A DNA stretch of 64,000 nt from Epithemia pelagica (GCA_946965045.2 OX337230.1:2232001-2296000); one strand, 5' to 3'. Counted from the first letter of the stretch, positions 1 to 19,935 are shown. Notes: generated by a model from the letters alone, not told the origin. Numbers and translations are program-made.

Positions 1-2
1 AA

Positions 3-694
3 GGCTTTGCATCATTGTCCAGATTCGGGCGGCAAAATCACATCCAGCAGCCGATGGAAACGACCCACGTCAACAGTTTGGTCAGTTCAAGGTCATCGCA
101 GAGCTGCTCTCCAACGACACTCTTTGCGACAGAAGAAAAGGCTGCTCCAATGGTAACGGGAGAAGAACTGGAACTTATGCTACAGGAGTGGGATCAACCC
201 CTTGTTTTGGATGCCTACGCGACATGGTACGTGTTGGTCGAACTTCTTCGACCAACGTCTTTGAACATACGACGTCGTGATGTTTACTTGCGATTCTGCA
301 AAATGCCAGAGCATGTCGTCATTATCTCACAAACATGAAATGTGTCTGGCTATTGCTGTTGCTCCTTTTTTCATGATTCTACGTGATTCGCAGGTGTGGT
401 CCATGTGTATTGATGGCACCAGAATTTGAATCGGCTGCACAGGAACTCAAAGGTCGGGTGCGGTTTGTCAAGATGGATACTGACCAAGAAGAGACCATGG
501 CAGCTCGCTTAAATATCATGGGATTGCCAACTCTCCTTTTCCTGGGGAAGTACGAACCCAAAGAAGGAGAGGAGAACGCTGCTGCCAAGGCCGTATTGAA
601 AGGCAGAATTGAGGGCGCCTTACGGAAACAGGACATTGTGGATTTATGTGAACACTACTTCTTTGGGGCACCGGCGCCACAACAATTGTATTAA
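3..694 (+). CDS. Thioredoxin, TrxZ/CITRX-like, probably plastid-targeted; 5' end runs off the window; intron 227-393
   Basis: Splicing GT(227)..AG(393) joins DAYAT-W to CGPC, restoring WCGPC. The downstream VLMAPE..VKMDTDQE..GLPTLLF resembles TrxZ/CITRX. The frame is open from base 3. Confidence 0.85.
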
Positions 695-1533
695 CTTCTA
701 ACCTATCCAGGCATGGCGGTAAACACTTCATGGTTGCGAGTTGCGACACAATCACGTCGGCCAGCAACATATTACGTTCTAGTGGTTTGAACTTCTCGTT
801 TCTCGTATGCCATTTTCGTCCGACTGCGGGTTTCCTCAGCCCAAACCATTTCAGTAGCTGCTCGGATGGTCGACCAGTAGACTCAAAGCAACGATGAATG
901 GAGCGGTAGATGGTACCCGTGCCGTACATTTGCACAGAATCATCCGTCAATCGCGCCAAACCTTCACTTTGTAACTTTACATCCAGCGTCTACAAGATCA
1001 AAATGTAATGTCACTTGTCACAACATGTCGATCCAGTGCTTGTGTCAACCTCTTGGGCGAAAAAGTTTTTCTTTCGTTCCAACGTCACAACAAAACATCC
1101 ACGTGGAACATGAAGCTCTTGATCGAATTCGTGAATCAAACGTCGCAATGCGCTGCGGGTTTGGTGAGTTATATTGAAGCCCTTTCGTTGCTTCTTCAAA
1201 GTGCTCGGTGTTTTTCTCAAGCGTTATAGTATATTCTTTCCATGTCAATCATCATAATATTTTTCAATGAAACCGTCACTCATTCCAGTCATGAACACTG
1301 GGAAGTTTTGTTTTCTCCATCTGTTCTTCGGCACGATAGTTCGGTAAGCCACGCGAAAAAGTAACGAAGGAGAACTTGCAGGTTCGTCTTTCGTCTTTCA
1401 CTTCTTGACTCTTTTGACACACAAAAAACAAACTCAAGAGCTTTGACACTTCGCCTCTATCTTTCTTTGACCCCCATTTGACACTTTGTCAGTTTTATTT
1501 TATTCCTTTCCGACAACCACAAACTCTCTCATC

Positions 1534-3184
1534 ATGACACTTCCGCAAACAATCACTGGAAAGCCTTTCGAACATCAGGGCGAAAGCATGGCCTCAACAA
1601 TTCGTTCTGAAGCCGCTTGGGACGATGAAATGGCTTTCTCCGTCGACCAACTCTTCTTTGTAACCAGTTACAGGTGGGTAGATGTGATCAGAGATCAAAA
1701 TGAGCAGAGATCTTGATAAACCTCACTTTTCTATGTTTCTTGTATTCGTGTTGAACAGTGACTTTGATAAGCTTGCCCATGGCCCTCGGGGAATGGAAGC
1801 AAAACATTCTTTGCATGTTTACCGATTCCACCCCCATGACGGTTCCATGTTGCTTCTCAACATCTGTGGCTCTGCAAGTGAAGTGAAGAACCCTGCGTTC
1901 TCTATCTGTCACCCTCGGCTAAATGTTGTTTACACATGCACTGAAGACATTGTCAACAATGGTAGGATTTTCGCTTATGCATTGGGCGATAATGGTGAAC
2001 TTACACCTCATGGTGAACCCGTTGATGCCGGTGGCACCAGTACATGCTATTTAACCATTGATCGAGCCGGCAAGAATATGCTGGCTGTCAACTACTGGGA
2101 CAGCACTCTTGCTGTTATCCCTTTGGATCACGAAACGGGAAAGTTACTGGGTCCCATCAAGAGCCTCTACGATCCCAAGGCTGGCAAGAAAGTCGTGGCA
2201 GCCGGGAAGATGGCAGGTGGTGTCAACCATTCTGATAACGATGAAAGCACCATCAAGATGCGTCAAGCAGACCCTCACTCCCACGCGCTTGTACTCGATC
2301 CCTATGTTGGTACCATCGCCTATGTACCTTGCCTTGGCAAGGATGTTATTCGAGAGTTCTTTTACAATCGTGAAGACGGCAGGATTGAAATGGAACTCAA
2401 CACACTGCCTTCAGGTCTGAGTACTGGAATGCCTGATGGACCTCGTTACTTTGAATTTCATCCAAAGTTCAACATTGCTTACTGCATCAATGAGTTAAGT
2501 GCGACTGTCGCTGTCTTTGAAGTCGATCGTCCTCTCCTTCATGAAATGGCACATGCTTCTTCGACTGGACAAGACATGGAAAAGTACAAGGGAAGGTCCA
2601 CTTTGCGTCTCATCCAATCTATTAAAACCATTCCGAACGCGTTCCCAACCAGCATGAACACATGTGGTCGAATTTGCGTACACCGATCTGGCCGCTTCGT
2701 CTTAGTCAGTAACAGAGGACATCAGTCCATTGCAATTTTCAAGGTTTTTCAAAAAGGCCTGAAACGAGGTGAACTCAAGACGGTTGGATACTTTCACACT
2801 CGAGGTGAAACACCTCGTCACTTCAACTTTGATGCCTCGGGACAATACTTGTTGGTTGCAAATCAAGATACCAACTCTGTGGCTATCTTTAACTTCAATC
2901 TGTCATCTGGCGAAATCAAGTACACAGGAAATGAATATCGTGTCCCATCTCCTAACTTTGTCTGTTGTTGCCCTTTGTCTGGTAATGTGGACGACTCTGG
3001 CCTGCTCGACAATGCAGTCGGCAATGATTTGAGGGTGGGCGATGATGCGGCAAGCGCGACAGACTCCGACTCGGCTACCACCCAAGCTCTCATCCCTTCC
3101 AAAGAAGACCTCATGAATGAACTTGCACGTGCTCGACAAGAAATTGCCGCGCTGAAGGAAGAACTCACGTCTCTCAAGGGATGA
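1534..3184 (+). CDS. Lactonase, 7-bladed beta-propeller (6-phosphogluconolactonase Pgl/YbhE family); intron 1674-1758
   Basis: Motifs DPHSHAL, GPRYFEFHP, LVSNRGHQSIA, GETPRHF and LLVANQDTN. Intron GTGGGT..CAG joins the two ORFs in frame (VTSY-S-DFDK). Confidence 0.85.
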
Positions 3185-3934
3185 TGAACAAACTAGTCAG
3201 TCCCTGAGTTTCAGTAAGTACAAACCCGACTGGGTTGTATTGTTGCTGTCAACGACGCGCGAACTTGTTCTCCTCCGTTTTTTTCTTCTTGTTTCATGAC
3301 ACCCGTGAGCATTGCGTTTATTCGCCGTTACCAAACCGCGCACCCATAGATTTTTAGGGTAACCAAGTCTTGTACTTTAGTTGAAATGAATTTTTTTGTA
3401 AAACGTTTTGTTCTTTGCATAACCCCAATCGAGGTGGGAGTTGCCTGTGCTAGATGCACCGCACGTAGCCTCCTTTGTTCATTACGTGGACACTTTCGCG
3501 CACAGTTTAATCACTCATTGCCTACACAGCTTGTCTTCCTATACAGTTTTTTCTGTGTGCGAGGAAGAAAGGTCCATCGACTCACACATCCTACATTAGG
3601 GCTTACTGGTTGTTGGGCTACTGGGAGAGTCGGGCTGTGGAGGGTGTTGATGTTGATATATAAGGTTACAGGAGTTGATCATCACCAAGGCAAAGACCAC
3701 ACATTAAATCATAGTTCTCATTCATTGTACTCCTAGTACAAGTATAGCCGGCGCGTAGTTTACGCGGATCTATAGCCATGGTAGCTTCCATGGTACGTCC
3801 GTTGACCGGATAGTTTTCCATTTCCCATTGCCAACCATCTCTTCTCTCAGATTTTCATTGATCCAAAATAAAAAAAAAAGCTTGATAGATTGGTAAGCTC
3901 GGCGGGTTGCAATTTGCAATCCATCAACGAAACA

Positions 3935-5456
3935 ATGAGTAAAAACAAAAAAGGATCCACATCAAAAAAGAAGAAACACGCGGAAGGGAAGTCGACGATG
4001 GAGAAAAAGGCTCCCAAACAGTCGGAACGAGTAGAGCCTGACGAGGACGATGCAGTAATTACTTTAGAAGCGTTGAACGCCATGTCCGACAGCGATGATG
4101 ATGGAGATGGCGAAATGCCACCGGAAGAAGAATGGAATGGAGAGGCCCGCTCTTTGAAAGAGGCCATCGAGTCGGGAATTTTCAACAAACTTTTGCGGCA
4201 AAAGAAGTCCTCCAGAATGGAAGGTGACGATGAATCGATCGAAGAAGTTGTTTTAGATGACGATGATGATTCATCCGTAGGGAGTGACATGCATGAAAGA
4301 GAGAAAGGTGGGGAAGGAGAAAACGACAATGAGCATGTTGAGGAGGAGAAGGAGGATGACGACGACGACGGCGACAAGAACAGCAATGAAGAAGAAACGA
4401 GCGATATTCTACTTGATTCTGAACAATCCAAATTCCCAACGAACCAAGCACACGACACTGACAATGAGACACCGGGGATCCAAGGAGAGGAAGAGGACTT
4501 GGAAGAGAAACCAGAAAGAGTCGATGACGAGGATGACGAAGAGGAAAATAGCAAAGAAGACGAGGATAGCGCCAGTAATGATGAAGAAAGTGACCAAGAG
4601 CCGATATCCATTAAAGAGCTCAATGCAAGGAATCAAAAATCATTACGGTCCGAGGCAAGTCAGATCCTGAACCGACAGAGACAGCTAACATGGCCTGAGA
4701 CGTTTGATGTTGTGTCTGCAGCACCTCTTCCATTTGATCATGAAGATGAAGAAGGGAACAAGACAGATATCCATGATGATTTGAAGCGGGAAGTTGCGTT
4801 TTACAATATGGCTTTGGAAGCAGCACTTCAAGGACGTCAAAAGTGTAATAGTGCTGGCATCCAATTTTCCAGACCAGATGATTTTTTCGCTGAGATGGTG
4901 AAAACAGACGGTAGGTCGTTGCAACGCTTTTCACTATTCGCTCACGTGGTTTATGGAAATTAACTCTTGATGCTTCCGCTCTATTACAGAACACATGGCG
5001 AAGATTAAGGATCGCCTGATTTTTGAAAGCAAAAAGATTGATGCCGTCAATCAACGCAAAGCCAACAAAGAGCAAAAGCTCCGTTCGAAAGAGTCACAGG
5101 CGAGTCGACTGGCAGAGAAAGCCAAGCGAAAGAAGGATAACCTCAAAGCGGTGGATGAATGGGCCAGGGATGCAGCCTCCAAACGCAGTGGTGGCCAGTT
5201 GTCGAATGACATGGATTTGGGAACGCGGAATTCCCCAAACAAGAGGCGGTTAGCTGCCAACAAACGATACGGCTTTGGTGGTAAGACAGGTCGGTTCAAG
5301 CAAACCGATCCAAAGGCACTCAATGATATGTCAGGATTCAGTTCCAAAGGAAATTTTTCGGGAGGACGGAAACGTACGGGTGGCTCTGGTGGAGGAGGAG
5401 TGGGCAAAAGACCAGGAAAGCGAGCCAGAGACGCAAACCGAGCGCGCAACAAGTAG
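3935..5456 (+). CDS. EBP2: rRNA-processing protein EBP2; intron 4911-4989
   Basis: DDLKREVAFYNMALEAA..FSRPDDFFAEMVKTD|EHMAKIKDRL and NKRYGFGGK are Ebp2 motifs; the intron is in phase; acidic N-terminus. Confidence 0.92.
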
Positions 5457-5609
5457 TTGAAGCGCTTACCTTGCGATAACGTTTCTCCTTCGGTTCACTT
5501 TCCTTTGCCGTACTTCTTCAACGATCCATCAGTAAACAGCAAGTCAACTACGCGGCGTTTGCAAGTTTCATGCGGATAATGAACCTTTTGATGACGTCAA
5601 AACCCAACT

Positions 5610-6291
5610 TTAATCACTTTTCCTTTTCTCCTTCTCCTCCTCAAGCTTTTGCTGCATCATGGCCAAGAAAGATCCGTCATTGGCGAATTGCTGCCCGTTC
5701 GATTCGAGCGAGTTTGTTTCTTCTTCTTTCTTTGAAGCTTTTTCTTCTTCTTTCTTTGCAGTTTTTGCCGGCACAGCAAATTCGTCTTCTTCTTCTTGGT
5801 CGTGAACATCGTCCCCACCGACGTCTTGTTCCAGTGAAATGCCAGCCTTAAGAAGATTTTCGCGGCGTTTCTTGGCTTCCTTGTGCTTTTGTCGCTTTTT
5901 TCGTTTTTTGTCAGTTTTCTCCATTTCGCGCTGCTGATTTTCGACCAACTCTCGTTGGAACTCCTCGTCCTTGCGTTGTTCCTCTTGGTCCAACCTTAGA
6001 GTTTCCATGCGAGCCATTTCGCGCGCTCGAGCTTGTCGATAGACATGAAACTCTCCGGAATTTGCACCCGCAGTAGAACCATAGGCGTTGACAATCTTTT
6101 CCGTTTTGACTATCGTGATTCGTGATAGAAGAACAGCATTCAGAAAAACAAACAAGACTCTTGCACGAAACACATGAATACATACCTTTTTCTGCATTCT
6201 TCCCCTCACCACCAATGGCTTGCTGATAGGAAACCGTTTGCACATTCGAGTTGTTGTCGCTGTACGCTTGAACTGTTGAAAACTTGGGCAT
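5610..6291 (-). CDS. PRKRIP1: PRKR-interacting protein 1-like (DUF1168); intron 6110-6185
   Basis: Motif GSTAGANSGEFHVYRQARAREMAR followed by a K/R-rich coil. GTATGT..ATAG splicing joins MPKFS..AEK to VKTEKIVN. Confidence 0.8.
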
Positions 6292-6642
6292 TGTAATAGC
6301 ATGGGTCTCGTAACATCAAGTTGCGGCCGAAATGTTACATCGGAAATCGGAAATGGAGAAAGTTGAAGGGGAACTCCTCCCCCTCTCGCTTCTCCCCCCC
6401 CCTTCCAAAGCACACGGTCGCACCTCGAACAAAGAAAAGTCTCTAGCTAGAGGAGTAGCTACCATCGAGAATTCTCAGCGGTCGGCGTTAGCGTTAGCGG
6501 GCTTGGTGGTGGAGCCATATTAGCGGTTAGCTCTAGGCCTTGGGGATGGGGAGTATACAAGGATATACAGATTTTCATGTGAAACATTCCGATTTCCGAT
6601 ATGGGAGCAAAGAAGCAACATACTTGAAGCGACGCCGCCACC

Positions 6643-7358
6643 ATGGGTAACAATCTGTCCATCGTCTCGTACGAATGTCCAGAATGCAAAGCAACCGTTG
6701 AAGCATTGAAAATGTTTGAGGGAGTAAGATGTTTGGAATGTACGGGCCACGGTGCTTTCGAACGCGATTTTCGGGCGGCTGGTGAAAAGTGGCAAAATGG
6801 CGATCGAGATTTGAGCTCGTACGTCGGTCTGGTTCAAAAACTTGTCAGATCTGGTGTAGCCGAAACGTATGAAAACGAAGTGACCAGGGCTGCCCAAGAA
6901 CACTTGTCCGTCGATATGGACACTTCGATTGTGTACGACGGCATGGCTCACACTATATCGTTCGGAGGAGAGACTTATTCCGCGTACAATAACGTCCAAT
7001 CAAAAGCAAATGGACCGGCACCTATGGCTTTTCGCATATTGTTTATAAACATGAGGAAACAACCTTCAATCAGCGTATTTTTGGCAGTGTTGCCAACGTT
7101 GTGTTTCATGTACCCGGACGAAGTGGCATGGGTATTCATTCTGGACGAGAGCATGACATGGACAAGATGGGAAAGAGCGGCATGGAACACTGCACCGATG
7201 GATGCATTCGTACCACCGATGAAGTTATGAGTCGATTGGTCGTCTTTGCGGCGGCGAAAAATCCTGAACTTGTCGTGAAGAACAATGAAGATTGCATTGC
7301 CGATTATACCAGACGAAAACATGTTTGGGAAGAAGCGGCGGCTCGTGCCTCTGCGTAG
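6643..7358 (+). pseudogene. Frameshifted gene: N-terminal MGNN and two CxxC, fused to a bacterial Tlde1/L,D-transpeptidase-like domain
   Basis: Frame A gives ..YSAYNNVQSKANG(P). After a shift at about 7015-7017, frame B gives GTYGFSH..VFHVPGRSGMGIHSGR..CTDGCIRTTDEVMSRL, with an H..T-x-G-C catalytic-type motif. Confidence 0.6.
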
Positions 7359-7625
7359 AAACTATGACAAAAGTCGATGTAACTTGCATCCTCCCTGGTT
7401 AGGATCCACATCCCCACCATTCGGCCTTCTTCGTACCTATTGTCGTCAATTAAGTCATCCAAACCATCAATACCTCTAAGCAATTTCAAAACGACTCCTA
7501 GGGCACTTTGGTTTGAACAAGCTCTTTTGCCTCACTTCTCTAACTTCCAATGGCTGTAGGTAGCATGCCTAGCTCAAGTATTGGAGACTGGCGCCTTTGA
7601 TAGGAGTTGTCAGTTGCTCTCGTAT

Positions 7626-8504
7626 CCCTCCGATTGCGGGGGTACCTCCCGTCTGCTGTCCATACGGTTATTCCCAAATTTTCCTAAAAAATGTAAAAAT
7701 TATTTCTTTCAAATTTCTTTTGATTTAGCACATTATTATAACGTCCAAGCCAACTGTAATAACTGGCTTCGCCCTATTGTGTAGCCGCTTGCGCTCATGA
7801 ATGGGAAACAGGAACCGTGAGCCGTGAGACTTGACGAGACATGCACAGAGAAATCTACAAGCCCATTTTGTACTCTAAAGTCTATACTGTTTCAGAAGCG
7901 AATACTCTTTACTCTTTACGTAGTAGTGGATCAAGCTTTACGGAATCATCACACACACACCATGAAAAAATACACACACATGGTGCAATGCACCTCTAGG
8001 AGTATCAACACAAGCTCCGGGCACTTTGTCTATGGGAAAGATAAAAGCATAGTCCACTACTAGTTTAGGCTTCCTGCTTCCTGGGCTTACATACCCCATG
8101 ATGACGCTGTCAAACCTTCGCTTCATCATTGCAGAGGTTGATTGTTCATTGCAGTGGTTGATTGTCATGTTTCATGTTGTCATCCTTCCTTTGATGTATT
8201 CCGCCTTCACTTGTGATCTAGGTGGATGGTTTTGGCCATAAAGTTGTCACTGTGGTCGTTCGTACGGCTGGATGGTTTTCTTTTGGTTTTTGGTGTGCTC
8301 ATGGTCGTCTTTTGTGGTGTTGCTCGAAAAGTGAGACGATTCCTGGCCCTTGTGCCAGCAATACAAGGCGTGACCGGCGCGTCTATTTCGAACGATCGAA
8401 AGGAGGCTGGCGATATCACCCGGCTGGCGCTTTGGGAAAAAATACGAGACAATTTTTTTCCTTTCGGATGACGGACGAGCAAAGGTACCCCCCCAATCGC
8501 ACCC
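7626..8504. mobile_element. About 880-bp insertion present only in copy A, possible non-autonomous element
   Basis: Replaced by 24 bp in copy A'. Subterminal inverted 17-mer CGATTG(C/G)GGGGGTACCT at 7631-7647 and 8483-8499; no convincing ORF; no clean TSD. Confidence 0.4.
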
Positions 8505-8671
8505 TTTCGCCCGTAATTCAAGGATGCGAACCTGCGACCGGAGCTTTCTGTGAAGTGAATCTTTCGTCTTTTCCTAAGATCGCACCATCAACGTCTCAGC
8601 ATCATTGTTCCTATTGAACTCAGCAGCGTCCTTCTCTTCGCTTCATCTATCCAAGTGACCCAACCACCATC

Positions 8672-9397
8672 ATGGTATTGAATCAAATTCGAGCGCGCTT
8701 CGGCAAAGCTCTAATGGAAGCGATTGGAACTTTTGTGTTGTTGTTGACGATTCAATTGGCAGTCCATTCGCCGTCGAACTCTGACAAGGCTCCCATGTCC
8801 ATTGGTTTGGTGCTTATGGTCTTGGTGTACGCCGGTGCTCCGATTTCTGGAGCCCATTACAATCCGGCCGTGACGTTGGCCTTGACCTTGACGGGTCGAG
8901 GATGTTTTCATGCGCACGGTCTGATTGTATATTGGATCTTTCAATGCGCGGGCGCCATTGCTGGCGCCGCGGTCGGCAATGCCTTGATTCCAGACAACGA
9001 CGAAGCGGCAAACATTGCTGTGGATTCTCATGTCACGGTTTGGCAAGCCTTGGGTGGTGAATTGGTCTTTACGACCCTTTTGTGTTTGGTCGTCTTGTGT
9101 ACCGCCACGCACTCCAAAGTCGAAAACAATGGCTATTTTGGCGCCGCCATTGGTTTGACTGTCACGGCCGGGGCCGTGGCGGCTGGTCCATGGTCCGGTG
9201 GAGCCTTCAATCCGGCCGTGTCCTTGGGATTGGGTATCGTGGCCATGGATTTGGGCAGTGGATACAATTTCATTACCGCCCTGGTCAATTTGTTGGGCGG
9301 TGTCATGGCAGCCGCCCTGTTTTACCTCGTGGCACCGGATCAATACGACCCGACACAGAGCCAGTACGAACCCATTGCCGGAGGAGTGGCTGCATAA
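8672..9397 (+). CDS. Aquaporin (MIP family), copy 1
   Basis: Two NPA boxes (HYNPAVT, AFNPAVS) and six hydrophobic segments; 241 aa. Confidence 0.95.
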   Translation: MVLNQIRARFGKALMEAIGTFVLLLTIQLAVHSPSNSDKAPMSIGLVLMVLVYAGAPISGAHYNPAVTLALTLTGRGCFHAHGLIVYWIFQCAGAIAGAAVGNALIPDNDEAANIAVDSHVTVWQALGGELVFTTLLCLVVLCTATHSKVENNGYFGAAIGLTVTAGAVAAGPWSGGAFNPAVSLGLGIVAMDLGSGYNFITALVNLLGGVMAAALFYLVAPDQYDPTQSQYEPIAGGVAA

Positions 9398-9762
9398 GTG
9401 GAGGACCGCGACCAAAGACAGAAGGCAACAGTAGTTATGCAGGAATCATTGTCTCACAAAATCATCCATAAATTAATGAGAAAAGGACTTCGAGTTGGTT
9501 GGGCCATGTTCGCTTAGAAAGAATATCGGTGCCGTGTTCTTACCTTGTGCCAGATATCTGACCGTAGGCCATGATCGTGTTGGAAGTCTGTTTTCTGCAT
9601 TATAGCCGCATGCAATAGGGAAAACGGGAACTTTTTGTGAGGCTATGGCTCGCCACTAGCTAGAACTACCTACTCCCATGGTGAGAGAGAGATATTCGAA
9701 TCATATCCAAGAATACTCATTGGGAATGAGATGCGTCGTTAAATAGAAGTTTCGTGACCAAC

Positions 9763-9949
9763 TGAATAAATCCCGCCAACAGGTCGCATATTGGCGGATA
9801 CATGGTCGCATATTGGCGAATATGCATCGCCTACATATGCTGCATGCTGCTACGCATCTACTCCTAGTTTTCTAGTCATAATTTTGGTCTAGCCACTTGT
9901 TGCACGCCGTATACACCGTGTTTTAGCGTGTAGTGGCAGGATTTATACA
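9763..9949 (+). repeat. 5' LTR (187 bp) of the truncated Copia copy
   Basis: TGAATAAATCC...GGATTTATACA termini; equals the 174-bp LTR plus 7- and 6-bp insertions and a few SNPs. Internal 22-bp tandem repeat GGTCGCATATTGGCG.. at 9782-9825. Confidence 0.93.
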
Positions 9950-10905
9950 GTCTATCAGACCCAGCATTCAGCAGTCGCAGTAGTTTAGAGGTTAATGTTT
10001 GCTGTAGGCATGTAAGGTCGGGGCGCAAGACGTTTCCCCGCTGGTAAGAGATACGTCCTCTCAAGACAGGCCTGCCCCTGGGCCCTAGGGCAATAACGGG
10101 TCTACCTGTTTGCTCATAAGAGTTATGTGCATAGATGAGCGGGGGAACGAATATGTGTTTTTTATCTAACTCACCAACTATGCTAGCTAAGCTATGCATC
10201 ATGTGAAACTCCTTGGAGTTTTGCTCTTTGCCTTTTGCCCGTACTGGCAGCGGCTGATCACCGCTTGGGAGTGTTCGCGCTAAGCTACTCGTCACGGTAT
10301 GCTTGCGGCACTACTCATAGTTCACACTCGTGATGTGTGACCCATGGCATTCTCCCACGTGACGGGGAGCACTCGCTTAAGTGAGCGATTGTTTTGGTAA
10401 TCTTTTCTCCATATATGAAAATATAGATACCTCCTTTTGCACTGTGCCGACGCACACGTCCTAACTATTTGTTGTCTGCCAACTGCAGCGTAAACGCAAG
10501 TCGACACTGCTTGTGCACCTCAATTCCAGGTAGAATCGCAAAATCTGCGATCTGCATCACCTTTTGGCAATGCTCCCACACTTCTGTGTTTTTTGCCTGT
10601 GTTTTGCTCTGAACCTCTTCTGCTTCTGGCTCTCTTGCTTTCCTTTTGCCTTCCACCATGTCTTCATCCACTGCCCCTGAAAATCCCAAGGAAGATTTCA
10701 AGGCTGCCGTTAAACGCTGTGGATACAATGATGCCACCGTTACCTACATCATTGAGCAGGGTTTTGATGATGCTCAATCGTTCATGACTGTTGCGGTCCA
10801 TCAAGTGCCGTCGATGTTGAAGATGATGGCAAAGACCCCTCCAGAGAATGGGGCCTTTCCCTTCAGTGCTAACCTGCAGCTCCACGGCTTCCGAATGTGG
10901 CTCGA

Positions 10906-10929
10906 CAATACGAGCACTCGTGTATCAAT
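10906..10929 (+). repeat. Left TIR (24 bp)
   Basis: CAATACGAGCACTCGTGTATCAAT; 22/24 match to the reverse complement of 17514-17537. Confidence 0.92.
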
Positions 10930-11256
10930 TCTCCTCACCTCCACGTGCCAAAACGGTCCCAAAACCCGCCACACTCTCAAAATGACTGGCTCGCGCACCA
11001 TTATTGCCGGCCTTCCTCATTAATTACAAAAATCATACGACACAAAATATTTAATCAAGAATCATATAGAATTGTCATAGAGCTGTCTCATTTCTCTCAT
11101 TTTTCTTGATCGGCACTCACCCAGCTTGGAGGCAACATTGGTCTCGTTCCATCAAATGCCAATGGTAACGACCATGGATTGATTGATCGTCAACATCCCA
11201 ACTTCTCACAATAACATCTATTGTTTGTTTTTTGACCGTGAGCAATAACCTACAAC

Positions 11257-13134
11257 ATGCCCGGACAGGACATGCACCATCCGGTGTATGTCTACAACAT
11301 GCAAGATTCTTTTAGAATCGGTTCATTCGTCCATATTCGTTTGCCCAAACAAGATGAAGACACAACAACCATTGCCCGTCTTGATTATGCCTCTGACGGC
11401 GAATTGGCCTTAACACTTTTCTTTCCGCTCTTCCCTCCCACGGAGTTGACTTGCCACCCACCACCCCCTGACCATTCCATCGACCCAATTGTTCACGGAA
11501 CAGGCAAAGACCATATCGAGTTATACCGGTCTGGCATCCAAATCAAACAATCCCATGTGATACACAAACAAATTCCTGTCCTATACCCTGCCTTCGTCTT
11601 CAACATTCAAGATTTGTCACATCCACAAAACGCTTGGGCCTCTGGAATGCGTAATGTCTACGTTGTACGCTATAAACAACGCCGCATAGACGATGTTCCG
11701 AAACTTGTCCCCATCAAGCCTAACGAGGTTGTCTGTTTTCCCACTGAAAACATTGCTCCTGACGAGAACTCACTCATTCTCTGTCATCGCTGTTATCATC
11801 GGAATGTCTGGACGGGTCTTTACTTGCTTCGCAAGGCCATAAGTAAAGTACTGAACCGCAGAAGTGGTACTTCGGAGAAGCATCAAGTGGTCAATACCTG
11901 TGCCATTGGTCTAATACCGTTGGAAGTCTTCAATTACATTCATGTTATTGCCAATTCCAATGTCCGTACACTAACCTGTCACCACCTTTCTTCTTCAGAG
12001 TCCTACATGCATATTGACGAGCATCTTACCCGCCGTAAGCTCAAATTCGAATTTGAACAGGGTATGATGCGTTTCGTCTCCTGTGATGACATGGACCTAC
12101 TTCGCCAATTCCTCGGTCTCGGAGCTGTCTATGGCTCACCGGAAATCAAGCCTACGTTAGCAGAATCAAAGCACGGGCACTCCTTGAAAAAAGGACACGC
12201 ACTTACCCTTGTCCAAGGCTCGAATAATGAAAATGCTTCCCCTCCCTTCAAACGTTGGTCCAAGGAACAACGGGTGGATATTTCCTTCTCACCCACACAG
12301 GTTCGTGTTACAGTTTCGTATTGCCGTTACCGCTACGACACCTTCCGATCGAATGGTGCTCTCAAACACGAACCTCCTACTCCTCATCTACAGGCACTGC
12401 TACGACGTCGGAAGTACGACGAACGACCTGATACAGTCTTTTGTCCAAAATCCAAGATTTCTCCGAGTCCATCTTCTGCCTCTGGCCAGCCTTCTGATAT
12501 TTCTGGCGATATTGACTCTTCCCCCCAAGATTTTCCTGACAAGAAACCTGCCGCAGCCGATGACGACACGTTCCACCAGATCCTCAACATGTCGGAAGAC
12601 AGTATTCTGTCGGACGACGAGGAAGAGGACCAGGCTCACCCTTTAGCAACGACCATTCCTGATGTCAATTCGAAGACATCAGATGAGGCAAGTATCAAGA
12701 ATGGACCGACGAAGAAAAAGAATTCTCCCGGCTCCTCTGTTGAGGATCTTCATCTTCAACCGATGGAAGATCATATGAAAATCAAGATTGGTCTGATTTG
12801 TGCCTATGTCGGTGATCAATTCTACGACCAACAGTCCGTAGTCGAAATCGAATTCATTCTCAAGCCCTCCGTCGATAAACGATTTCTCATTCGTGACAAG
12901 AAAACGGGGAAGCTCTTTACCTCGACTATCCATTCCCCCACGTCCACCAACGAACCGTCCTTCTCTGCTGGATACAGCCACGAAGCCACCATCCCAAGTA
13001 CCAAAGGTCCGTTTTATGTATGTCGTCCAGTGGCTGGTTCCCTACACGTCAAGGATCTCGAGTCCTGTCATCAAATGATCATTGTCAAGGAACATTCTAC
13101 GGAAATACTACGCAAGATTCGTGACTTCAACTAA
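11257..13134 (+). CDS. Transposon-encoded 625-aa protein of unknown function; N-terminus BAH-like by eye
   Basis: Intact ATG-to-TAA ORF inside the TIRs. FRIGSFVHIR..IARL..LTLFF recalls the BAH pattern; acidic/Ser-Pro linker at about aa 410-490. Confidence 0.75.
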   Translation: MPGQDMHHPVYVYNMQDSFRIGSFVHIRLPKQDEDTTTIARLDYASDGELALTLFFPLFPPTELTCHPPPPDHSIDPIVHGTGKDHIELYRSGIQIKQSHVIHKQIPVLYPAFVFNIQDLSHPQNAWASGMRNVYVVRYKQRRIDDVPKLVPIKPNEVVCFPTENIAPDENSLILCHRCYHRNVWTGLYLLRKAISKVLNRRSGTSEKHQVVNTCAIGLIPLEVFNYIHVIANSNVRTLTCHHLSSSESYMHIDEHLTRRKLKFEFEQGMMRFVSCDDMDLLRQFLGLGAVYGSPEIKPTLAESKHGHSLKKGHALTLVQGSNNENASPPFKRWSKEQRVDISFSPTQVRVTVSYCRYRYDTFRSNGALKHEPPTPHLQALLRRRKYDERPDTVFCPKSKISPSPSSASGQPSDISGDIDSSPQDFPDKKPAAADDDTFHQILNMSEDSILSDDEEEDQAHPLATTIPDVNSKTSDEASIKNGPTKKKNSPGSSVEDLHLQPMEDHMKIKIGLICAYVGDQFYDQQSVVEIEFILKPSVDKRFLIRDKKTGKLFTSTIHSPTSTNEPSFSAGYSHEATIPSTKGPFYVCRPVAGSLHVKDLESCHQMIIVKEHSTEILRKIRDFN

Positions 13135-13161
13135 ACAGTAGGAGTAACCATTAGTCATTCT

Positions 13162-15468
13162 CTATTCGCTTTCTTCATCACTACCAATTTCATATCTTTC
13201 GCTTTGTTCCTCTTCATCTGCAACGCTCGATGATTCCGATTCGTCTTCGGACAATTCCGATTCGTCGACGGTTCGTCCTTTGCTGTCATATAACTTGAAC
13301 GCAAGATTGCGGACCGCTTCGTCCAAAGATTGTTCATACAACGCACTCTTACCGATAGTGTAATCAAATTGTAGCTCAACTCTCTCTTCCTCAGCTCCCA
13401 AAGCAACTTCGGATGGTCTGTCACTTATCAATTGACCGAATTCTATAGTTCCACCCAGGTTCTTCACCCAATCCCTTGAATAGTCCTTGTCTTCCTGTGT
13501 CAGAGAAGCAAGTTCATTCCGAATATCCTCCTCTGTATACTTTCGCATGAATATGGTACGTCGCTGTACCCATCGTGCCATCGGAAGAAGTCGAGACTGC
13601 TTCCCACGGCCTTTGCTCACGCCCCCCCCCCTTCTTTGTGTACGATTGAAAAAGTAGGTTTTGAATGCGCTATTGAACGCTTCCCAACCTTGTTGCGAGT
13701 GGTTGGACAAGTTTCGCCAGTGTTGTAGATACTCTAGTACATGTCCTGAGCCAAGCATATGGCCATAGTTGGTGATCCCCTCGGATCCGTGTAATTCAAT
13801 CCGATTGCGGAACCACAGATCTGCAGACCTTTGGAATTCCCATACCTCTTGGTCCGAGAACGGGGTCCGCTGGCGTAGTTTTGTCATTGCATCCGCGTAA
13901 TGACCAACCGACTCCTTCCATAGTTCCTTATCTTCCTCGTTGTCTATACACAAGTCCACGAAGCTAGAGATTCCAATCAGCATTGCTCGGACCTGCACGT
14001 TGTCCAGCTTTACAATTCCAACTTGCTTGGTATCCTCGTCGAAAGGTATACTCCATTGTGCTTGGTTTGTTAGGGTCCCCAGCATCTCTCGGTTGATTCG
14101 TTTCTCGAGTTCTGCTTTGAGAGTATGACAGGCGGTTACGTCACTTCCTTTACAATTGTCCGGCATCCAAGCCAACGTACCCTTTTTGGTATTGGTGAAA
14201 CCATCTTTGAGGCACATTGTCAGGATCTTAATACCCAACCGGATCTCCATGTGCAATATACATGGTACTAGATCCATCATCATGACCAAAGCCGAGTTGG
14301 CATTGCCCTGTCCAAACTTCTTCACAGTTTTAGAAGCATCATGGTACGTCCACTCGGAAACATGTTGAAGAAAGAGCCGTGCCTGCCTTTGTACGAGAGA
14401 TCCTTCCAGCGATAGGTCGCGTAAGGCCAAGTCTTCTGTGAGGTAGGTAGAATAAGTTTTCCGTTGTGGACGGGTTGCTTTTTCCAAATCGAAATGAATG
14501 GAAGATAAATTGTCTTTCTCATTCTCACCATGTGGAATCCGAGGATCACCCCGCACCGCTATGTGAGACTCATCCCAAATCTCTTCGATCTGCTTGCTTA
14601 TTGCTGGCATGTCTTTTTCGAACCGTTTGACTCTACTGCGTAGTGTCTTCAGGTGCTCTGGTGTGCACATTTTGTGGTGGCGGCACTCCCATTCTGGTAT
14701 ATTGTCGTGTCCCATAGCATAACACCAATTACAGAATATCCTCTCTTCTTCTGTTGACTCGTCATCGTCTTGTGGATATGTAGGCATGGCCAGGTTGGTA
14801 GATTCTATAGGACACTTTGTACATGGGAAACGGGCATTCTTGGCTGCACCTCCACATCCTGCGAGTTTCCACTCGCAGGACATGTCGCAGTTCGTAACGA
14901 TCCAGATTGCCATAATGCCGAGGAGACGGGGGAGTATTGTATGCGCAGCTTCCGCAATCTCAGCGAACAAGATGGAGAAAATTCCTCGAACGTTCTTCTT
15001 TTTCTCACCTCCCATGACACATAGAAGAGGTGTGACATCATTCCGGGAGGAGGTGAGTGGGTTGGAGCTGTCGTTAAACTTCAACCCGGCCATTGTGATT
15101 TGGTGTTTCTTAGAAAGGGTGGCTCCGTCGAGAGTCTGTGCCATCATCAAGTTTCGGGACTTGGCATCCTCCGCGACGTCACGAGCGAGTATGATTTCCC
15201 GACCCATATCGGATGGGCGGAAGTAGAATCCTTCCGAACCGTCGTTTGTGTCTCTAATCATCTTGAAGCGTATCTTGATATTTCCAAAGGATTCAATCAT
15301 CGCCGCCATTTGTTTTAGGGAACTGGAACTAGGGATCATAGTTCGCAAATGCTTTTTACCGTCGTTCTCACATCGGCGAAGAATCTCGATTCCTTCGAAG
15401 GTTAATACCCCCCCTGCCAAGTCCATGTGGCGTAGAATCCGGAAGGGGGTAAAGACTGTTGTCCGCAT
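13162..15468 (-). CDS. DDE transposase core, RAG1/Transib/Chapaev-like (768-aa ORF)
   Basis: In order: TLDGA (D114), PLLCVMGGE, TNCDM (D195), PCTKC, CILHMEIR, ITNYGHMLGSGH, SQQGWEAFNSAFK (E596). Collinear with the RAG1 core motifs CDG, PLCLMLADE, GYDEK, CTLC, ALHCDI, ITNYFHKTLAH, SEGNESGNK. Confidence 0.8.
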   Translation of the reverse strand: MRTTVFTPFRILRHMDLAGGVLTFEGIEILRRCENDGKKHLRTMIPSSSSLKQMAAMIESFGNIKIRFKMIRDTNDGSEGFYFRPSDMGREIILARDVAEDAKSRNLMMAQTLDGATLSKKHQITMAGLKFNDSSNPLTSSRNDVTPLLCVMGGEKKKNVRGIFSILFAEIAEAAHTILPRLLGIMAIWIVTNCDMSCEWKLAGCGGAAKNARFPCTKCPIESTNLAMPTYPQDDDESTEEERIFCNWCYAMGHDNIPEWECRHHKMCTPEHLKTLRSRVKRFEKDMPAISKQIEEIWDESHIAVRGDPRIPHGENEKDNLSSIHFDLEKATRPQRKTYSTYLTEDLALRDLSLEGSLVQRQARLFLQHVSEWTYHDASKTVKKFGQGNANSALVMMMDLVPCILHMEIRLGIKILTMCLKDGFTNTKKGTLAWMPDNCKGSDVTACHTLKAELEKRINREMLGTLTNQAQWSIPFDEDTKQVGIVKLDNVQVRAMLIGISSFVDLCIDNEEDKELWKESVGHYADAMTKLRQRTPFSDQEVWEFQRSADLWFRNRIELHGSEGITNYGHMLGSGHVLEYLQHWRNLSNHSQQGWEAFNSAFKTYFFNRTQRRGGGVSKGRGKQSRLLPMARWVQRRTIFMRKYTEEDIRNELASLTQEDKDYSRDWVKNLGGTIEFGQLISDRPSEVALGAEEERVELQFDYTIGKSALYEQSLDEAVRNLAFKLYDSKGRTVDESELSEDESESSSVADEEEQSERYEIGSDEESE

Positions 15469-15504
15469 GAAAGTTTTGAATTGCCGTAGGAATCGATGTT
15501 GTAA

Positions 15505-16995
15505 CTATCCGCCATGAAGGTCCGAGCCCAAAAACATATCGGCTAATAACTGAAAGAACTTGTCCGTTCTTCGACTGTCTATGGCATGGTTCTGTACGCT
15601 TTGTTTTACAACATCGTGGATGTAGTCAACGATCTCTTGGGCGCGGTCGTCATCGGTACAGGAAGAGGGAGGAAGTCGTCCATATTTTTCCTCATTCTCT
15701 TTCCTTGCTTCCTCTAGAGAGCGAATTTTGTCATCTTTGGCTTTGATATTTTTATCCTGGACCTTGTTACGTCGTTCCAGCTTTCGGATCTTATCTCTCA
15801 TCTCTCGAAGTCGTTCTTTCAGCAAATCAATGCGTGCAACAAGCAGATCCTTTTCGCGTTGGGGAGATAGAGGTTGTCGAACTGGTGAATGAGATACACG
15901 GGTGATTGCTGCTCTTGGAGATGTCAAGTTGCGACCGGCTAGGGAGGGGGGGGGGGGGGGGGAGAGAGGAAAAAGTTGGCTGCCAGTTAGTGGACGGCCA
16001 TTCGCGTCATTGGTGGTTGGAAAGGTCCTTGCACCCTCGAACAGACTCTGGTTGGGGAGCGTGGAGGTTGTATTTGTATTGGTTGTCGTTGGAGAACGGG
16101 TAGCTGTTGGGTTCAAAGTTGTCTGTGACAACATGTCGGTTTGAAAGATTATCGTCGTAGGTTGATGAGAAGATTGTGGTGGTTCGGTAGAACCTTGTTG
16201 CAATCTGCCCGTTGAGTCAATTTGTTGTGCTTCTGGGGAAGAATGACCATCGGTCCTATTGGATTCATTGATATTCTCTGGATTGGGAAGAAGAGTCGTC
16301 CTACGAACAGTCTCTGTTCCGTGTGATGACTCCTCGTCATCAAGAGTGGTGGTAAGAACAACGGCTTGCTTTCGACGGTGAGTTCGTTGCATCGGTGAAA
16401 TATTGGGAGCGGGTCCATTGCTTTGGTTCTGGTTTGTAGGATTCGTCAACGCGGCCGTAAGATTTTGATTCAGCACTATCACGTGCGGTTTTGGGACTGG
16501 ACGCGATTTCTGGCCTCGGGGAAGAATAGCTTTGACACGTTGGGTTGGGTATCCGACGCCGGTATGTTCGCATTTGCAGCTCCAACGTCCATTTTTCACC
16601 TTTCTGTTGACGTAGACGGAAGGATTTGTCTTCTCGTATTCGTCTGCGTCGTGACAGTTCCCACAGAACTTGAAGCCACGATAGATTTCTCGGCGATAAC
16701 TTCCAAATACAGAACAGGGCTTGTGCGTGTGCTTCTTGAACTCTCGACAGATGCGGGCTATTCTTTCTCTTTCGTCGTACGTAGCTATTAATGGAGTTCC
16801 GTCGGAAGACAGCCTTTTTGCCCGAGTTTGCTTGTTGGGAGAGGGTGGCCTCTTGGCAATTTCGAGTTGCTTTCGTCCATCTATGACCTTTCGTGCAAAT
16901 TTAGGGATTGGTTGACAAGGAAAGGTTCCATCCCTCTTCCTCCTCTGTCGGCAACGTCGAGGAGAGGATTTCTTCGACTTGCTCCGAGTCTTCAT
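15505..16995 (-). CDS. Probable N-terminal half of the transposase (basic NLS-like start, Cys/His cluster, low-complexity linker, coiled coil)
   Basis: In frame with 13162-15468 across a single TAG (LHGG*LQHRFLRQFKTFMRTT). Contains CxxC (FCGNCH) and CKCEH; heptad-like LLVARIDLLKERLREMRDKIRKLE. Confidence 0.7.
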   Translation of the reverse strand: MKTRSKSKKSSPRRCRQRRKRDGTFPCQPIPKFARKVIDGRKQLEIAKRPPSPNKQTRAKRLSSDGTPLIATYDERERIARICREFKKHTHKPCSVFGSYRREIYRGFKFCGNCHDADEYEKTNPSVYVNRKVKNGRWSCKCEHTGVGYPTQRVKAILPRGQKSRPVPKPHVIVLNQNLTAALTNPTNQNQSNGPAPNISPMQRTHRRKQAVVLTTTLDDEESSHGTETVRRTTLLPNPENINESNRTDGHSSPEAQQIDSTGRLQQGSTEPPQSSHQPTTIIFQTDMLSQTTLNPTATRSPTTTNTNTTSTLPNQSLFEGARTFPTTNDANGRPLTGSQLFPLSPPPPPSLAGRNLTSPRAAITRVSHSPVRQPLSPQREKDLLVARIDLLKERLREMRDKIRKLERRNKVQDKNIKAKDDKIRSLEEARKENEEKYGRLPPSSCTDDDRAQEIVDYIHDVVKQSVQNHAIDSRRTDKFFQLLADMFLGSDLHGG

Positions 16996-17513
16996 TGCAA
17001 TAGAGCAATGGTTGTCGTGTCTCCTGGCTAGGATCTGACAGAGGGTCTCTGTTGGATGGAAAAAGATGAGATCAGTTTGACATCGGCCAAAATTCCAAAA
17101 AAGGAGATTGAACAACGATCAATGTGCGATTGGGGGGGTATGTTTGTATTAAGGAATGTATATATTTTTCCCGTTGAGGAAAGCCGGTCGAGATAGTTTT
17201 TGTGCAGTGTGCCACAATTTGGGAAAAATTTGGGGGGGCCTATTTCAGGTGCCAAATGCACGCCAATGCAACGTCGATAGGTGTTATATTCTATGTGATT
17301 TAGATTCTCCATTATCGAAAATGTCTAAATGTATCGGAACATAACACTCAACGGCAATCGGTTTGGTCCAAAAGGTCGTTGGAAGTGAGATGGTCGGTTT
17401 TGGGGAAATTTATTTAACAAATTGGGGTTGGGGGAGGAGTACATATGGAGGGTATAGTGAGAGTGTCACTTTCTGAAGGATGAATGAGTCGCATTTGGGA
17501 AACGCCAGCATGG

Positions 17514-17537
17514 ATTGATACAGCAGTGCTCGTATTG
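17514..17537 (-). repeat. Right TIR (24 bp)
   Basis: ATTGATACAGCAGTGCTCGTATTG, the reverse complement of the left TIR with 2 mismatches. Confidence 0.92.
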
Positions 17538-18282: not shown

Positions 18283-19935
18283 CGAAAAATCCTGAACTTG
18301 TCGTGAAGAACAATGAAGATTGCATTGCCGATTATACCAGACAAAAACATGTTTGGGAAGAAGCGGCGGCTCGTGCCTCTGCGTAGAAACTATGACAAAA
18401 GTCGATGTAACTTGCATCCTCCCTGGTTAGGATCCACATCCCCACCATTCGGCCTTCTTCGTACCTATTGTCGTCAATTAAGTCATCCAAACCATCAATA
18501 CCTCTAAGCAATTTCAAAACGACTCCTAGGGCACTTTGGTTTGAACAAGCTCTTTTGCCACACTTCTCTAACTTCCAATGGCTGTAGGTAGCATGCCTAG
18601 CTCAAGTATCGGAGACTGGCGCCTTTGATAGGAGTTGTCAGTTGCTCTCGTATTTATAATTTCGTAGAAAATCCCCGTTTTCCCCGTAATTCAAGGATGC
18701 GAACCTGCGACCGGAGCTTTCTGTGAAGTGAATCTTTCGTCTTTTCCTAAGATCGCACCATCAACGTCTCAGCATCATTGTTCCTATTGAACTCAGCAGC
18801 GTCCTTCTCTTCGCTTCATCTATCCAAGTGACCCAACCACCATCATGGTATTGAATCAAATTCGAGCGCGCTTCGGCAAAGCTCTAATGGAAGCGATTGG
18901 AACTTTTGTGTTGTTGTTGACGATTCAATTGGCAGTCCATTCGCCGTCGAACTCTGACAAGGCTCCCATGTCCATTGGTTTGGTGCTTATGGTCTTGGTG
19001 TACGCCGGTGCTCCGATTTCTGGAGCCCATTACAATCCGGCCGTGACGTTGGCCTTGACCTTGACGGGTCGAGGATGTTTTCATGCGCACGGTCTGATTG
19101 TATATTGGATCTTTCAATGCGCGGGCGCCATTGCTGGCGCCGCGGTCGGCAATGCCTTGATTCCAGACAACGACGAAGCGGCAAACATTGCTGTGGATTC
19201 TCATGTCACGGTTTGGCAAGCCTTGGGTGGTGAATTGGTCTTTACGACCCTTTTGTGTTTGGTCGTCTTGTGTACCGCCACGCACTCCAAAGTCGAAAAC
19301 AATGGCTATTTTGGCGCCGCCATTGGTTTGACTGTCACGGCCGGGGCCGTGGCGGCTGGTCCATGGTCCGGTGGAGCCTTCAATCCGGCCGTGTCCTTGG
19401 GATTGGGTATCGTGGCCATGGATTTGGGCAGTGGATACAATTTCATTACCGCCCTGGTCAATTTGTTGGGCGGTGTCATGGCAGCCGCCCTGTTTTACCT
19501 CGTGGCACCGGATCAATACGACCCGACACAGAGCCAGTACGAACCCATTGCCGGAGGAGTGGCTGCATAAGTGGAGGACCGCGACCAAAGACAGAAGGCA
19601 ACAGTAGTTATGCAGGAATCATTGTCTCACAAAATCATCCATAAATTAATGAGAAAAGGACTTCGAGTTGGTTGGGCCATGTTCGCTTAGAAAGAATATC
19701 GGTGCCGTGTTCTTACCTTGTGCCAGATATCTGACCGTAGGCCATGATCGTGTTGGAAGTCTGTTTTCTGCATTATAGCCGCATGCAATAGGGAAAACGG
19801 GAACTTTTTGTGAGGCTATGGCTCGCCACTAGCTAGAACTACCTACTCCCATGGTGAGAGAGAGATATTCGAATCATATCCAAGAATACTCATTGGGAAT
19901 GAGATGCGTCGTTAAATAGAAGTTTCGTGACCAAC
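18283..19935 (+). repeat. Duplicated host segment, copy A', ending at the empty Copia insertion site
   Basis: Matches 7255-9762. After GTGACCAAC it continues into unique host DNA (TGAGCCAAT) instead of the LTR. Confidence 0.95.
18845..19570 (+). CDS. Aquaporin (MIP family), copy 2, same protein as copy 1
   Basis: Same 241-aa translation, and the overlapping alternative-frame ORFs listed in the track are also identical. Confidence 0.95.
   Translation: MVLNQIRARFGKALMEAIGTFVLLLTIQLAVHSPSNSDKAPMSIGLVLMVLVYAGAPISGAHYNPAVTLALTLTGRGCFHAHGLIVYWIFQCAGAIAGAAVGNALIPDNDEAANIAVDSHVTVWQALGGELVFTTLLCLVVLCTATHSKVENNGYFGAAIGLTVTAGAVAAGPWSGGAFNPAVSLGLGIVAMDLGSGYNFITALVNLLGGVMAAALFYLVAPDQYDPTQSQYEPIAGGVAA

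Follow-up and report, generated by a model that had tools for sequence, protein, structure and literature searches.

A frameshifted nuclear gene of the diatom Epithemia pelagica that probably carries a captured YkuD-fold bacterial effector domain

At positions 6643-7358 of the window (the whole stretch of DNA analysed, 64,000 nucleotides of one strand from Epithemia pelagica, GCA_946965045.2 OX337230.1:2232001-2296000), two open reading frames overlap in different frames, the first of them beginning with a cysteine-rich N-terminus and the second carrying the motif of a bacterial cell-wall enzyme. The locus thereby raises the question of whether the two frames belong to a single gene, and if so, what this gene encodes and how it came into a diatom genome. 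The original prediction was that a shift at about 7015-7017 joins the two frames. We found that frame A (6643-7015) and frame B (7016-7358) are halves of one gene and that the predicted position of the shift was exact, as DNA alignments with the copies on another contig place a 10-base deletion at 7015/7016. The features of the locus are as follows.

6643..7015, plus strand: 5' half of the gene in frame A, with the ATG at 6643, a zinc ribbon, a linker of three helices and the initial beta-strands of the YkuD-like domain
6676-6678, 6685-6687, 6730-6732 and 6739-6741, plus strand: zinc-ribbon Cys codons 12, 15, 30 and 33, frame A
7015..7016, plus strand: break point, with 10 bases missing relative to both other-haplotype copies in the DNA alignments
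7016..7358, plus strand: 3' half of the gene in frame B, with the remaining YkuD-like domain, a C-terminal helix and the KNNE..Y.RR tail; stop codon at 7356-7358
7137-7139, plus strand: catalytic His codon (GIHSGR), frame B
7203-7205 and 7209-7211, plus strand: Cys codon and Arg codon, respectively (TDGCIRTTD), frame B
7016..7230, plus strand: out-of-frame tail of the frame-A ORF (PAPMAFRILF..PMKL, then stop), about 70 meaningless codons without catalytic residues

In the ORF translation, frame A runs from the ATG at 6643 as MGNNLS..CPEC..CLEC..YSAYNNVQSKANG, and the N-terminus MGNNLS with CPEC..CLEC that had been described for this locus is thus read in this frame. The same frame can also be written MGNNLSIVSYECPEC..CLEC..IVYDGMAHTISFGGETYSAYNNVQSKANG, where IVYDGMAHTISFGGETYSAYNNVQSKANG is the end of its meaningful part. 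Frame B is open from 6993 and its translation reads ..TGTYGFSH..FHVPGRSGMGIHSGR..CTDGCIRTTDEVM.., with ..TGTYGFSHIVYKHEE..FHVPGRSGMGIHSGREHDMDKMGKSGMEHCTDGCIRTTDEVMSRLVVF.. as further stretches. The deletion shifts the frame within the conserved NGPxPNGxY segment of the YkuD-like domain, and because of a repeated C, 7016/7017 is an equally valid site for it. The product that the window allele can encode is 195 residues long and lacks the catalytic residues. Since the deletion precedes the catalytic His and Cys, the copy in the window is a null allele. An identical frame-A ORF was called as P0115 on the contig ctg1247l. Frames A and B were searched apart, and the naturally intact allele P0007 was used wherever the whole protein was needed (folding).

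This allele was found through a word search with the frame-B piece, which led to P0001 (96% identical) and to its cluster mate P0007 (278 aa). The latter reads uninterrupted across the junction (..QSKANGPYPNDTYGFSH..). Both are encoded on the ENA contig ERZ21939226:ctg1344l, which keeps the 10 bases, and both of these natural copies run through the junction in a single frame (..KANGPYPN[G/D]TYGFSH..). Over 7.6 kb, ctg1344l is 98.4% identical to positions 1-7625 of the window, and it probably represents the other haplotype or a very close strain of one sample. An intron at the junction, which had been thought unnecessary from the outset, was rejected, because the homologous copies read through without interruption and because the excision of a suitably long GT..AG segment within 6993-7230 would in every case cost conserved residues. 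A programmed frameshift was likewise rejected, as no X_XXY_YYZ slippery heptamer is present.

We also considered whether the frameshift could be an artefact of assembly or sequencing, with the gene being intact in the window haplotype. The contig ctg1247l is 100% identical to positions 3733-10230 of the window and carries the same 10-base deletion; it derives from the same ENA analysis, and one read set is probably behind both deletion-bearing contigs, so that their agreement over the deletion is not independent proof. However, the loss of 10 bases in non-repetitive, non-homopolymer sequence is atypical of long-read error, and the two assemblies are identical over 6.5 kb. Moreover, the other version of the locus comes from a separate assembly and shows a different 10-base deletion at another place, which argues that assemblers resolve such differences. 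An artefact is therefore very improbable.

Taking the deletion as genuine, we found a lesion of some kind in 4/4 copies of the gene across the two haplotypes. The copies, and the duplication in which one of them lies, are listed below.

Window copy 1, 6643-7358, plus strand: mid-gene frameshift inside the enzyme domain
Window copy 2, 18283..18386, plus strand: remnant consisting of the last 104 bases of the CDS, 99% identical to 7255-7358
Other-haplotype copy 1 (P0007): zinc ribbon, linker, whole enzyme domain and KNNE..RR tail motif in frame
Other-haplotype copy 2 (P0001): complete catalytic domain, first ~45 codons missing; adjoins a Copia-type element
7255-9765 and 18283-~20800: segmental duplication at 99% identity, each copy with a MIP/aquaporin gene

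Other-haplotype copy 1 has a second, separate 10-base deletion near its 3' end (L008:10700-10837), as a result of which the last ~10 residues of P0007 are replaced by an unrelated 46-residue tail. It is odd that two alleles of one gene should each carry a 10-base deletion of their own. Besides the 104-base remnant at 18283, no further copy was found in the 60.5-Mb assembly (23 pieces). The boundary at which the duplicated block starts falls within the 3' part of the YkuD-like gene, and the block is present in both haplotype versions. In the window, the duplicate blocks flank a Transib-like transposon (10906-17537); in the other haplotype, what lies between them is a piggyBac-type (DDE_Tnp_1_7) gene together with a Copia RVT_2 element. 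In addition, ~880 bases downstream of the gene (window 7626-8504) have no counterpart in the other haplotype, where L008 has ~30 bases. This difference could be an insertion in the window haplotype or a deletion in the other.

The presence of a different lesion in each of the four copies is what would be expected if the locus were a decaying relic without present function, neither haplotype making a working protein. The N-terminal part of the gene agrees with such a view, as the comparison of copies 1 of the two haplotypes gave 7.5 non-synonymous versus 1.5 synonymous differences there (the numbers are small). So does the metagenomic P0002 (L009:294-860), 63% identical over the frame-B piece, in which an in-frame TGA lies just upstream of the zinc ribbon and a stop follows directly after GCIRTTD; P0002 may be another decayed copy or one with an unrecognised intron. 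On the other hand, the same haplotype comparison over the enzyme domain gave 3 non-synonymous versus 8 synonymous differences (dN/dS 0.10, binomial P = 0.0004), which, although these numbers too are small, suggests purifying selection until recently and a young frameshift. Furthermore, the reading frame of P0007 is preserved through the zinc ribbon, the entire domain and the tail motif KNNE..RR, and other eukaryotes have intact full-length relatives (P0060 and P0155), encoded on short contigs that resemble mRNAs. Decay of the gene may be under way in this species, given that all four copies carry lesions; that it is already a relic without function seems to us possible but doubtful.

The reading that we consider probable is that of one intronless nuclear diatom gene with a captured YkuD-fold bacterial effector domain and a null allele in the window. 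Such a gene would encode a protein of ~238 residues, composed of a zinc ribbon and three helices, a YkuD-fold cysteine enzyme domain of ~130 residues and a conserved tail, and the enzyme would be of the L,D-transpeptidase/carboxypeptidase type. In the other haplotype the catalytic domain stays in frame, the separate 10-base deletion there altering only the last residues.

At the level of sequence, Pfam YkuD (PF03734) matched the frame-B piece at E 0.006 and 17.6 bits over profile positions 72-138, the cut-off being 23.4 bits. P0001 and P0060 also remained below this gathering score (19.6 and 19.4 bits, respectively), and the bacterial kin P0005 and P0006 (26.6 bits) and a Citrobacter protein (25.0 bits) passed it. 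Pfam Tlde1_dom (PF10908/DUF2778) had no match at E<=1 on the diatom proteins, and the scores of the bacterial kin, 20.8 and 17.6 bits, lie below its cut-off of 30.1 bits. NCBIfam returned nothing for the C-terminal piece, and a sequence search of solved structures with two profiles yielded RHS-core ends and chance matches and no YkuD or Tlde1 chain. With the Pfam match being sub-threshold and no solved chain recovered by sequence, the assignment rests on fold, motif and transitive homology.

The AlphaFold2 model of P0007, built on an alignment of 110 relatives, has a mean pLDDT of 79.7 and reaches 90-97 across residues ~95-225. Its top matches in Foldseek were all L,D-transpeptidases or carboxypeptidases. 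When aligned with VIA-align, the model gave Z 12.1 to both B. subtilis YkuD (1y7m) and Bdellovibrio Bd1075 (7o21), with an rmsd of 2.5-2.7 A over 106-112 residues, and Z was at least 8 for 83 of the 240 Foldseek-ranked chains, all listed ones being Ldt-type. A scan of 48,161 chains that was independent of Foldseek placed YkuD-fold chains at all of ranks 1-20 (Z 12.1 to 7.2), and the first unrelated chain had Z 5.3. Tlde1a (7uma) was aligned to the model with Z 9.0 and an rmsd of 2.9 A over 114 residues.

The catalytic signature in frame B is GIHSGR..(18)..TDGCIRTTD. The H-x(n)-[ST]-x-G-C motif on which the original prediction was based is thus kept, in the form His..Thr-x-Gly-Cys-Ile-Arg. Among the 110 relatives, H169, G171 and R193 are invariant, and C191, T188 and G190 are conserved in at least 90%. 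As the sequence searches reached no solved structure, this is a very divergent YkuD sub-family, which we file under the YkuD fold and not under Tlde1. Hence the earlier YkuD/Tlde1-like assignment stands as far as the fold and the structural likeness to Tlde1a are concerned, but it does not extend to membership of Pfam Tlde1_dom.

The relatives of the domain indicate where it belongs in bacteria. A profile search of 1.84 billion cluster representatives (50% clustering) retrieved 549 relatives at E<=0.001, 349 of them at E<=1e-10. The long relatives are RHS proteins with RHS_repeat, DUF6531 and an RHS core; the domain occupies their C-terminal ~130 residues and follows immediately on the DPxGL with which the RHS shell closes. 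The resemblance to RHS toxin C-termini, suggested earlier, was in this way borne out. In P0031, P0041, P0112, P0151, P0039 and the L036 protein, the stop is reached 21-25 residues after the end of the domain. A different arrangement was seen in Citrobacter amalonaticus (L049:3486-4884), where hcp (PF05638, 117 bits) is followed by the 156-aa YkuD-like protein and then by an overlapping 141-aa ORF that has no Pfam family. The hcp-effector-small ORF layout is as described for Tlde1 and its immunity protein (PMC9638812), and by analogy the 141-aa ORF is a candidate immunity protein.

A pattern scan with one genome per species found 53 loci, mostly in Pseudomonadota; the other phyla include Bacteroidota, Bdellovibrionota, Acidobacteriota, Thermodesulfobacteriota and others. 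Judging from these gene contexts, the sub-family appears to be a secreted antibacterial effector of Gram-negative bacteria that is deployed either as an RHS C-terminal tip or as a stand-alone protein behind hcp. One relative, P0003 (L007:1606-2082), lies on a phage-like contig between genes for a connector (phrog_332) and a major head protein (phrog_9953). A giant-virus or other viral vector was rejected, as IMG/VR contained only two matching contigs (L069 and L070), both of which cover the domain alone.

Full-length eukaryotic members of the family share parts beyond the enzyme domain. Ahead of it they carry a zinc ribbon (Y-x-C-P-x-C..V..G-x-x-C-L-x-C-x-G) followed by a helical linker, which are absent from the bacterial relatives, and behind it a tail of the form K/R-N-N-E..W/Y-x-R-R. 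Residues Y10, C12, P13, C15, V19, G27, C30, L31, C33 and G35 are invariant in all five eukaryotic lineages. At the N-terminus of the P0007 model, strands are predicted at 7-11 and 18-22 and helices at 37-51, 58-69 and 74-88. When the N-terminal module was modelled alone (pLDDT 72) and compared with the 48,161 chains, no score exceeded Z 5.2, and the best matches were generic helical bundles; the ESM Atlas offered no usable match for it.

In the careful maximum-likelihood tree of 101 domain sequences, with which the quick trees agree, the Epithemia-type copies together with P0002, P0060, P0155 and P0068 form one six-row clade (ultrafast bootstrap 100, SH-aLRT 91) within the bacterial and phage family; the root and the donor are not settled by the tree. 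P0060 and P0155 are complete ORFs of 253-256 residues on short AT-rich contigs with UTR-like flanks, and P0068 comprises the domain only, on a 65%-GC contig where it adjoins a mitochondrial-carrier (Mito_carr) gene. The foraminifer Bolivina argentea contributes P0143 (EukProt set), which joins the clade weakly in the best tree (46/23); it has the same architecture and probably belongs to the eukaryote clade. The rows nearest to this clade, P0094 and P0074, are unlabelled. A metagenome scan with a eukaryote-only profile found 13 loci, 0/13 of which cover the zinc-ribbon region.

The nearest non-eukaryotic relatives being bacterial and phage proteins, bacterial or phage contamination or a recent foreign insertion had to be weighed against a host gene. 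The locus, however, lies 2.2 Mb into a chromosome-scale contig, between the eukaryotic Ebp2 and MIP genes in both haplotype versions, and its GC content matches the surroundings. Both versions also share the duplication that takes in the 3' end of the gene together with MIP, and the eukaryote-specific N-terminal module is common to the foraminifer and other eukaryotes. We consider the probability of contamination or a recent insertion to be negligible. The horizontal acquisition of the enzyme domain from bacteria, as originally proposed, is supported by the sequence data: the eukaryotic rows group together (100/91) within a family found in bacteria and phages, and the gene has Ebp2 and MIP as neighbours. 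The most economical history would be a single capture from bacteria, followed by the fusion to the zinc-ribbon module and then by patchy retention or spread among protists.

The N-terminus had also been read as a myristoylation-like leader. The PROSITE PS00008-type pattern G-{EDRKHPFYW}-x(2)-[STAGCN]-{P} after Met1 does fit the window protein and P0007 (MGNNLSI), but it fails in P0060 and P0155 (MGDELST, with Asp after Gly) and is absent in the Bolivina protein P0143 (MAQEE). N-myristoylation of the Epithemia protein is thus suggested weakly by its own sequence and does not extend to these relatives. The diatom protein contains no signal peptide, and for this reason we place its presumed site of action in the host cytosol or at a membrane surface. 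If intact, it would be a Cys/His enzyme acting on the L,D bonds of the D-amino-acid-containing stem peptides of peptidoglycan, with carboxypeptidase and/or D-amino-acid exchange activity, as for Tlde1a, Csd6, Pgp2 and Bd1075. By analogy, the diatom protein could have an antibacterial, dae-like role. The missing signal peptide speaks against this reading of the protein, as an enzyme in the cytosol would have no obvious route to peptidoglycan.

The absence of a signal peptide could also be a sign that the domain has taken on a new substrate in eukaryotes in place of peptidoglycan, e.g., as a cytosolic cysteine peptidase or transferase acting on host or other targets, and is neither antibacterial nor dae-like. 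The hosts have no peptidoglycan of their own, and the conserved zinc-ribbon/helical module is found only in eukaryotes and has no structural match (best Z 5.2). Moreover, many bacterial L,D-transpeptidases come with additional domains that bind carbohydrate or peptidoglycan, and a Pfam scan of the diatom proteins detected none of these. Against this, the H..T-x-G-C-I-R signature and the substrate-side NN/GPWP motifs are unchanged from the bacterial effectors, which argues for the same chemistry and a similar substrate. On balance, we find the re-purposing rather unlikely and retain peptidoglycan as the presumed target.

The likely host is an Epithemia, whose nitrogen-fixing endosymbiont has a peptidoglycan wall. 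The published genome study reports 97 HGT candidates in E. pelagica and very little host-encoded control of the endosymbiont, and the words peptidoglycan and transpeptidase do not occur in its main text (PMC12377750). Given how little host control is reported there, a gene with such a predicted activity is worth a check of expression and localisation; a link to the endosymbiont is a possibility only. In its most far-reaching form, which we regard as improbable, Epithemia and a few protists with intracellular bacteria, among which the foraminifer Bolivina may be counted, would have retained the T6SS/RHS L,D-peptidase for their own use: tethered to a membrane and guided by its zinc ribbon, the captured enzyme would trim or rewire stem peptides in the peptidoglycan of the resident bacteria, including the nitrogen-fixing diazoplast. 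If true, the host could thereby influence how the wall of its endosymbiont grows, and classical protein import would not be needed for this.

Whatever the present role of the gene, the analysis defines a bacterial toxin sub-family of considerable size, with 549 relatives at 50% clustering, which occurs as RHS tips and behind hcp and whose detection by Pfam is marginal. It also defines a small eukaryotic clade derived from this sub-family, with a new zinc-ribbon front end, and a natural pair of a null and a near-intact allele in one diatom culture. The eukaryotic capture of bacterial cell-wall effectors is known for the dae amidases and GH25 lysozymes. In the literature searched, we found no description of a transfer of the YkuD/L,D-transpeptidase-fold effector class into eukaryotes, and as far as that literature goes, the capture of such an effector with a eukaryote-specific zinc-ribbon fusion would be a new addition to the known events.

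Among the known systems, the Salmonella T6SS effector Tlde1 (PF10908, 7UMA; PMC9638812) resembles the protein described here in being a small YkuD-fold Cys/His enzyme with the His..(S/T)-x-G-C motif, and the bacterial kin are deployed in the same manner, either as stand-alone proteins encoded after hcp, with a small ORF overlapping them downstream, or as fusions with a delivery protein. However, the P0007 model is structurally nearer to Bd1075, Csd6, Pgp2 and Ldts (Z 11-12), and the spacing from His to Thr is 18 in the diatom and 9 in the short bacterial kin, compared with 14-17 in the published Tlde1 motif. In addition, the window gene is eukaryotic and nuclear and has a zinc-ribbon N-terminus, and the diatom locus contains neither hcp nor an immunity-type partner.

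With the classical YkuD enzymes (YkuD, the mycobacterial Ldts, Bd1075, Csd6 and Pgp2), the predicted protein shares the signature formed by the catalytic His, Cys and Arg as well as the fold, for which Z is 11-12 with an rmsd of 2.5-3.1 A over 104-116 residues. Nevertheless, the identity is 12-19%, the diatom protein is without LysM, PG-binding and NTF2 domains and without an export signal, and the sub-family to which it would belong is distinct, its bacterial members being toxin tips. The likeness to the RHS/YD-repeat polymorphic toxins lies in the position of the domain, which in bacteria is the variable C-terminal toxin after the DPxGL cleavage motif; the diatom gene differs in corresponding to the toxin tip only, without RHS repeats, PAAR or VgrG-linked parts or an adjacent immunity-like gene.

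The closest parallel for the capture itself is provided by the Dae proteins, encoded by T6SS Tae amidase effector genes that were transferred to ticks and other eukaryotes. Dae are amidases of the NlpC/P60 type and are secreted via a signal peptide, whereas the diatom protein is a predicted YkuD-fold L,D-peptidase/transpeptidase that lacks a signal peptide and carries a zinc ribbon. In both cases, eukaryotes would have acquired an interbacterial effector that targets peptidoglycan and retained its gene in the nucleus.
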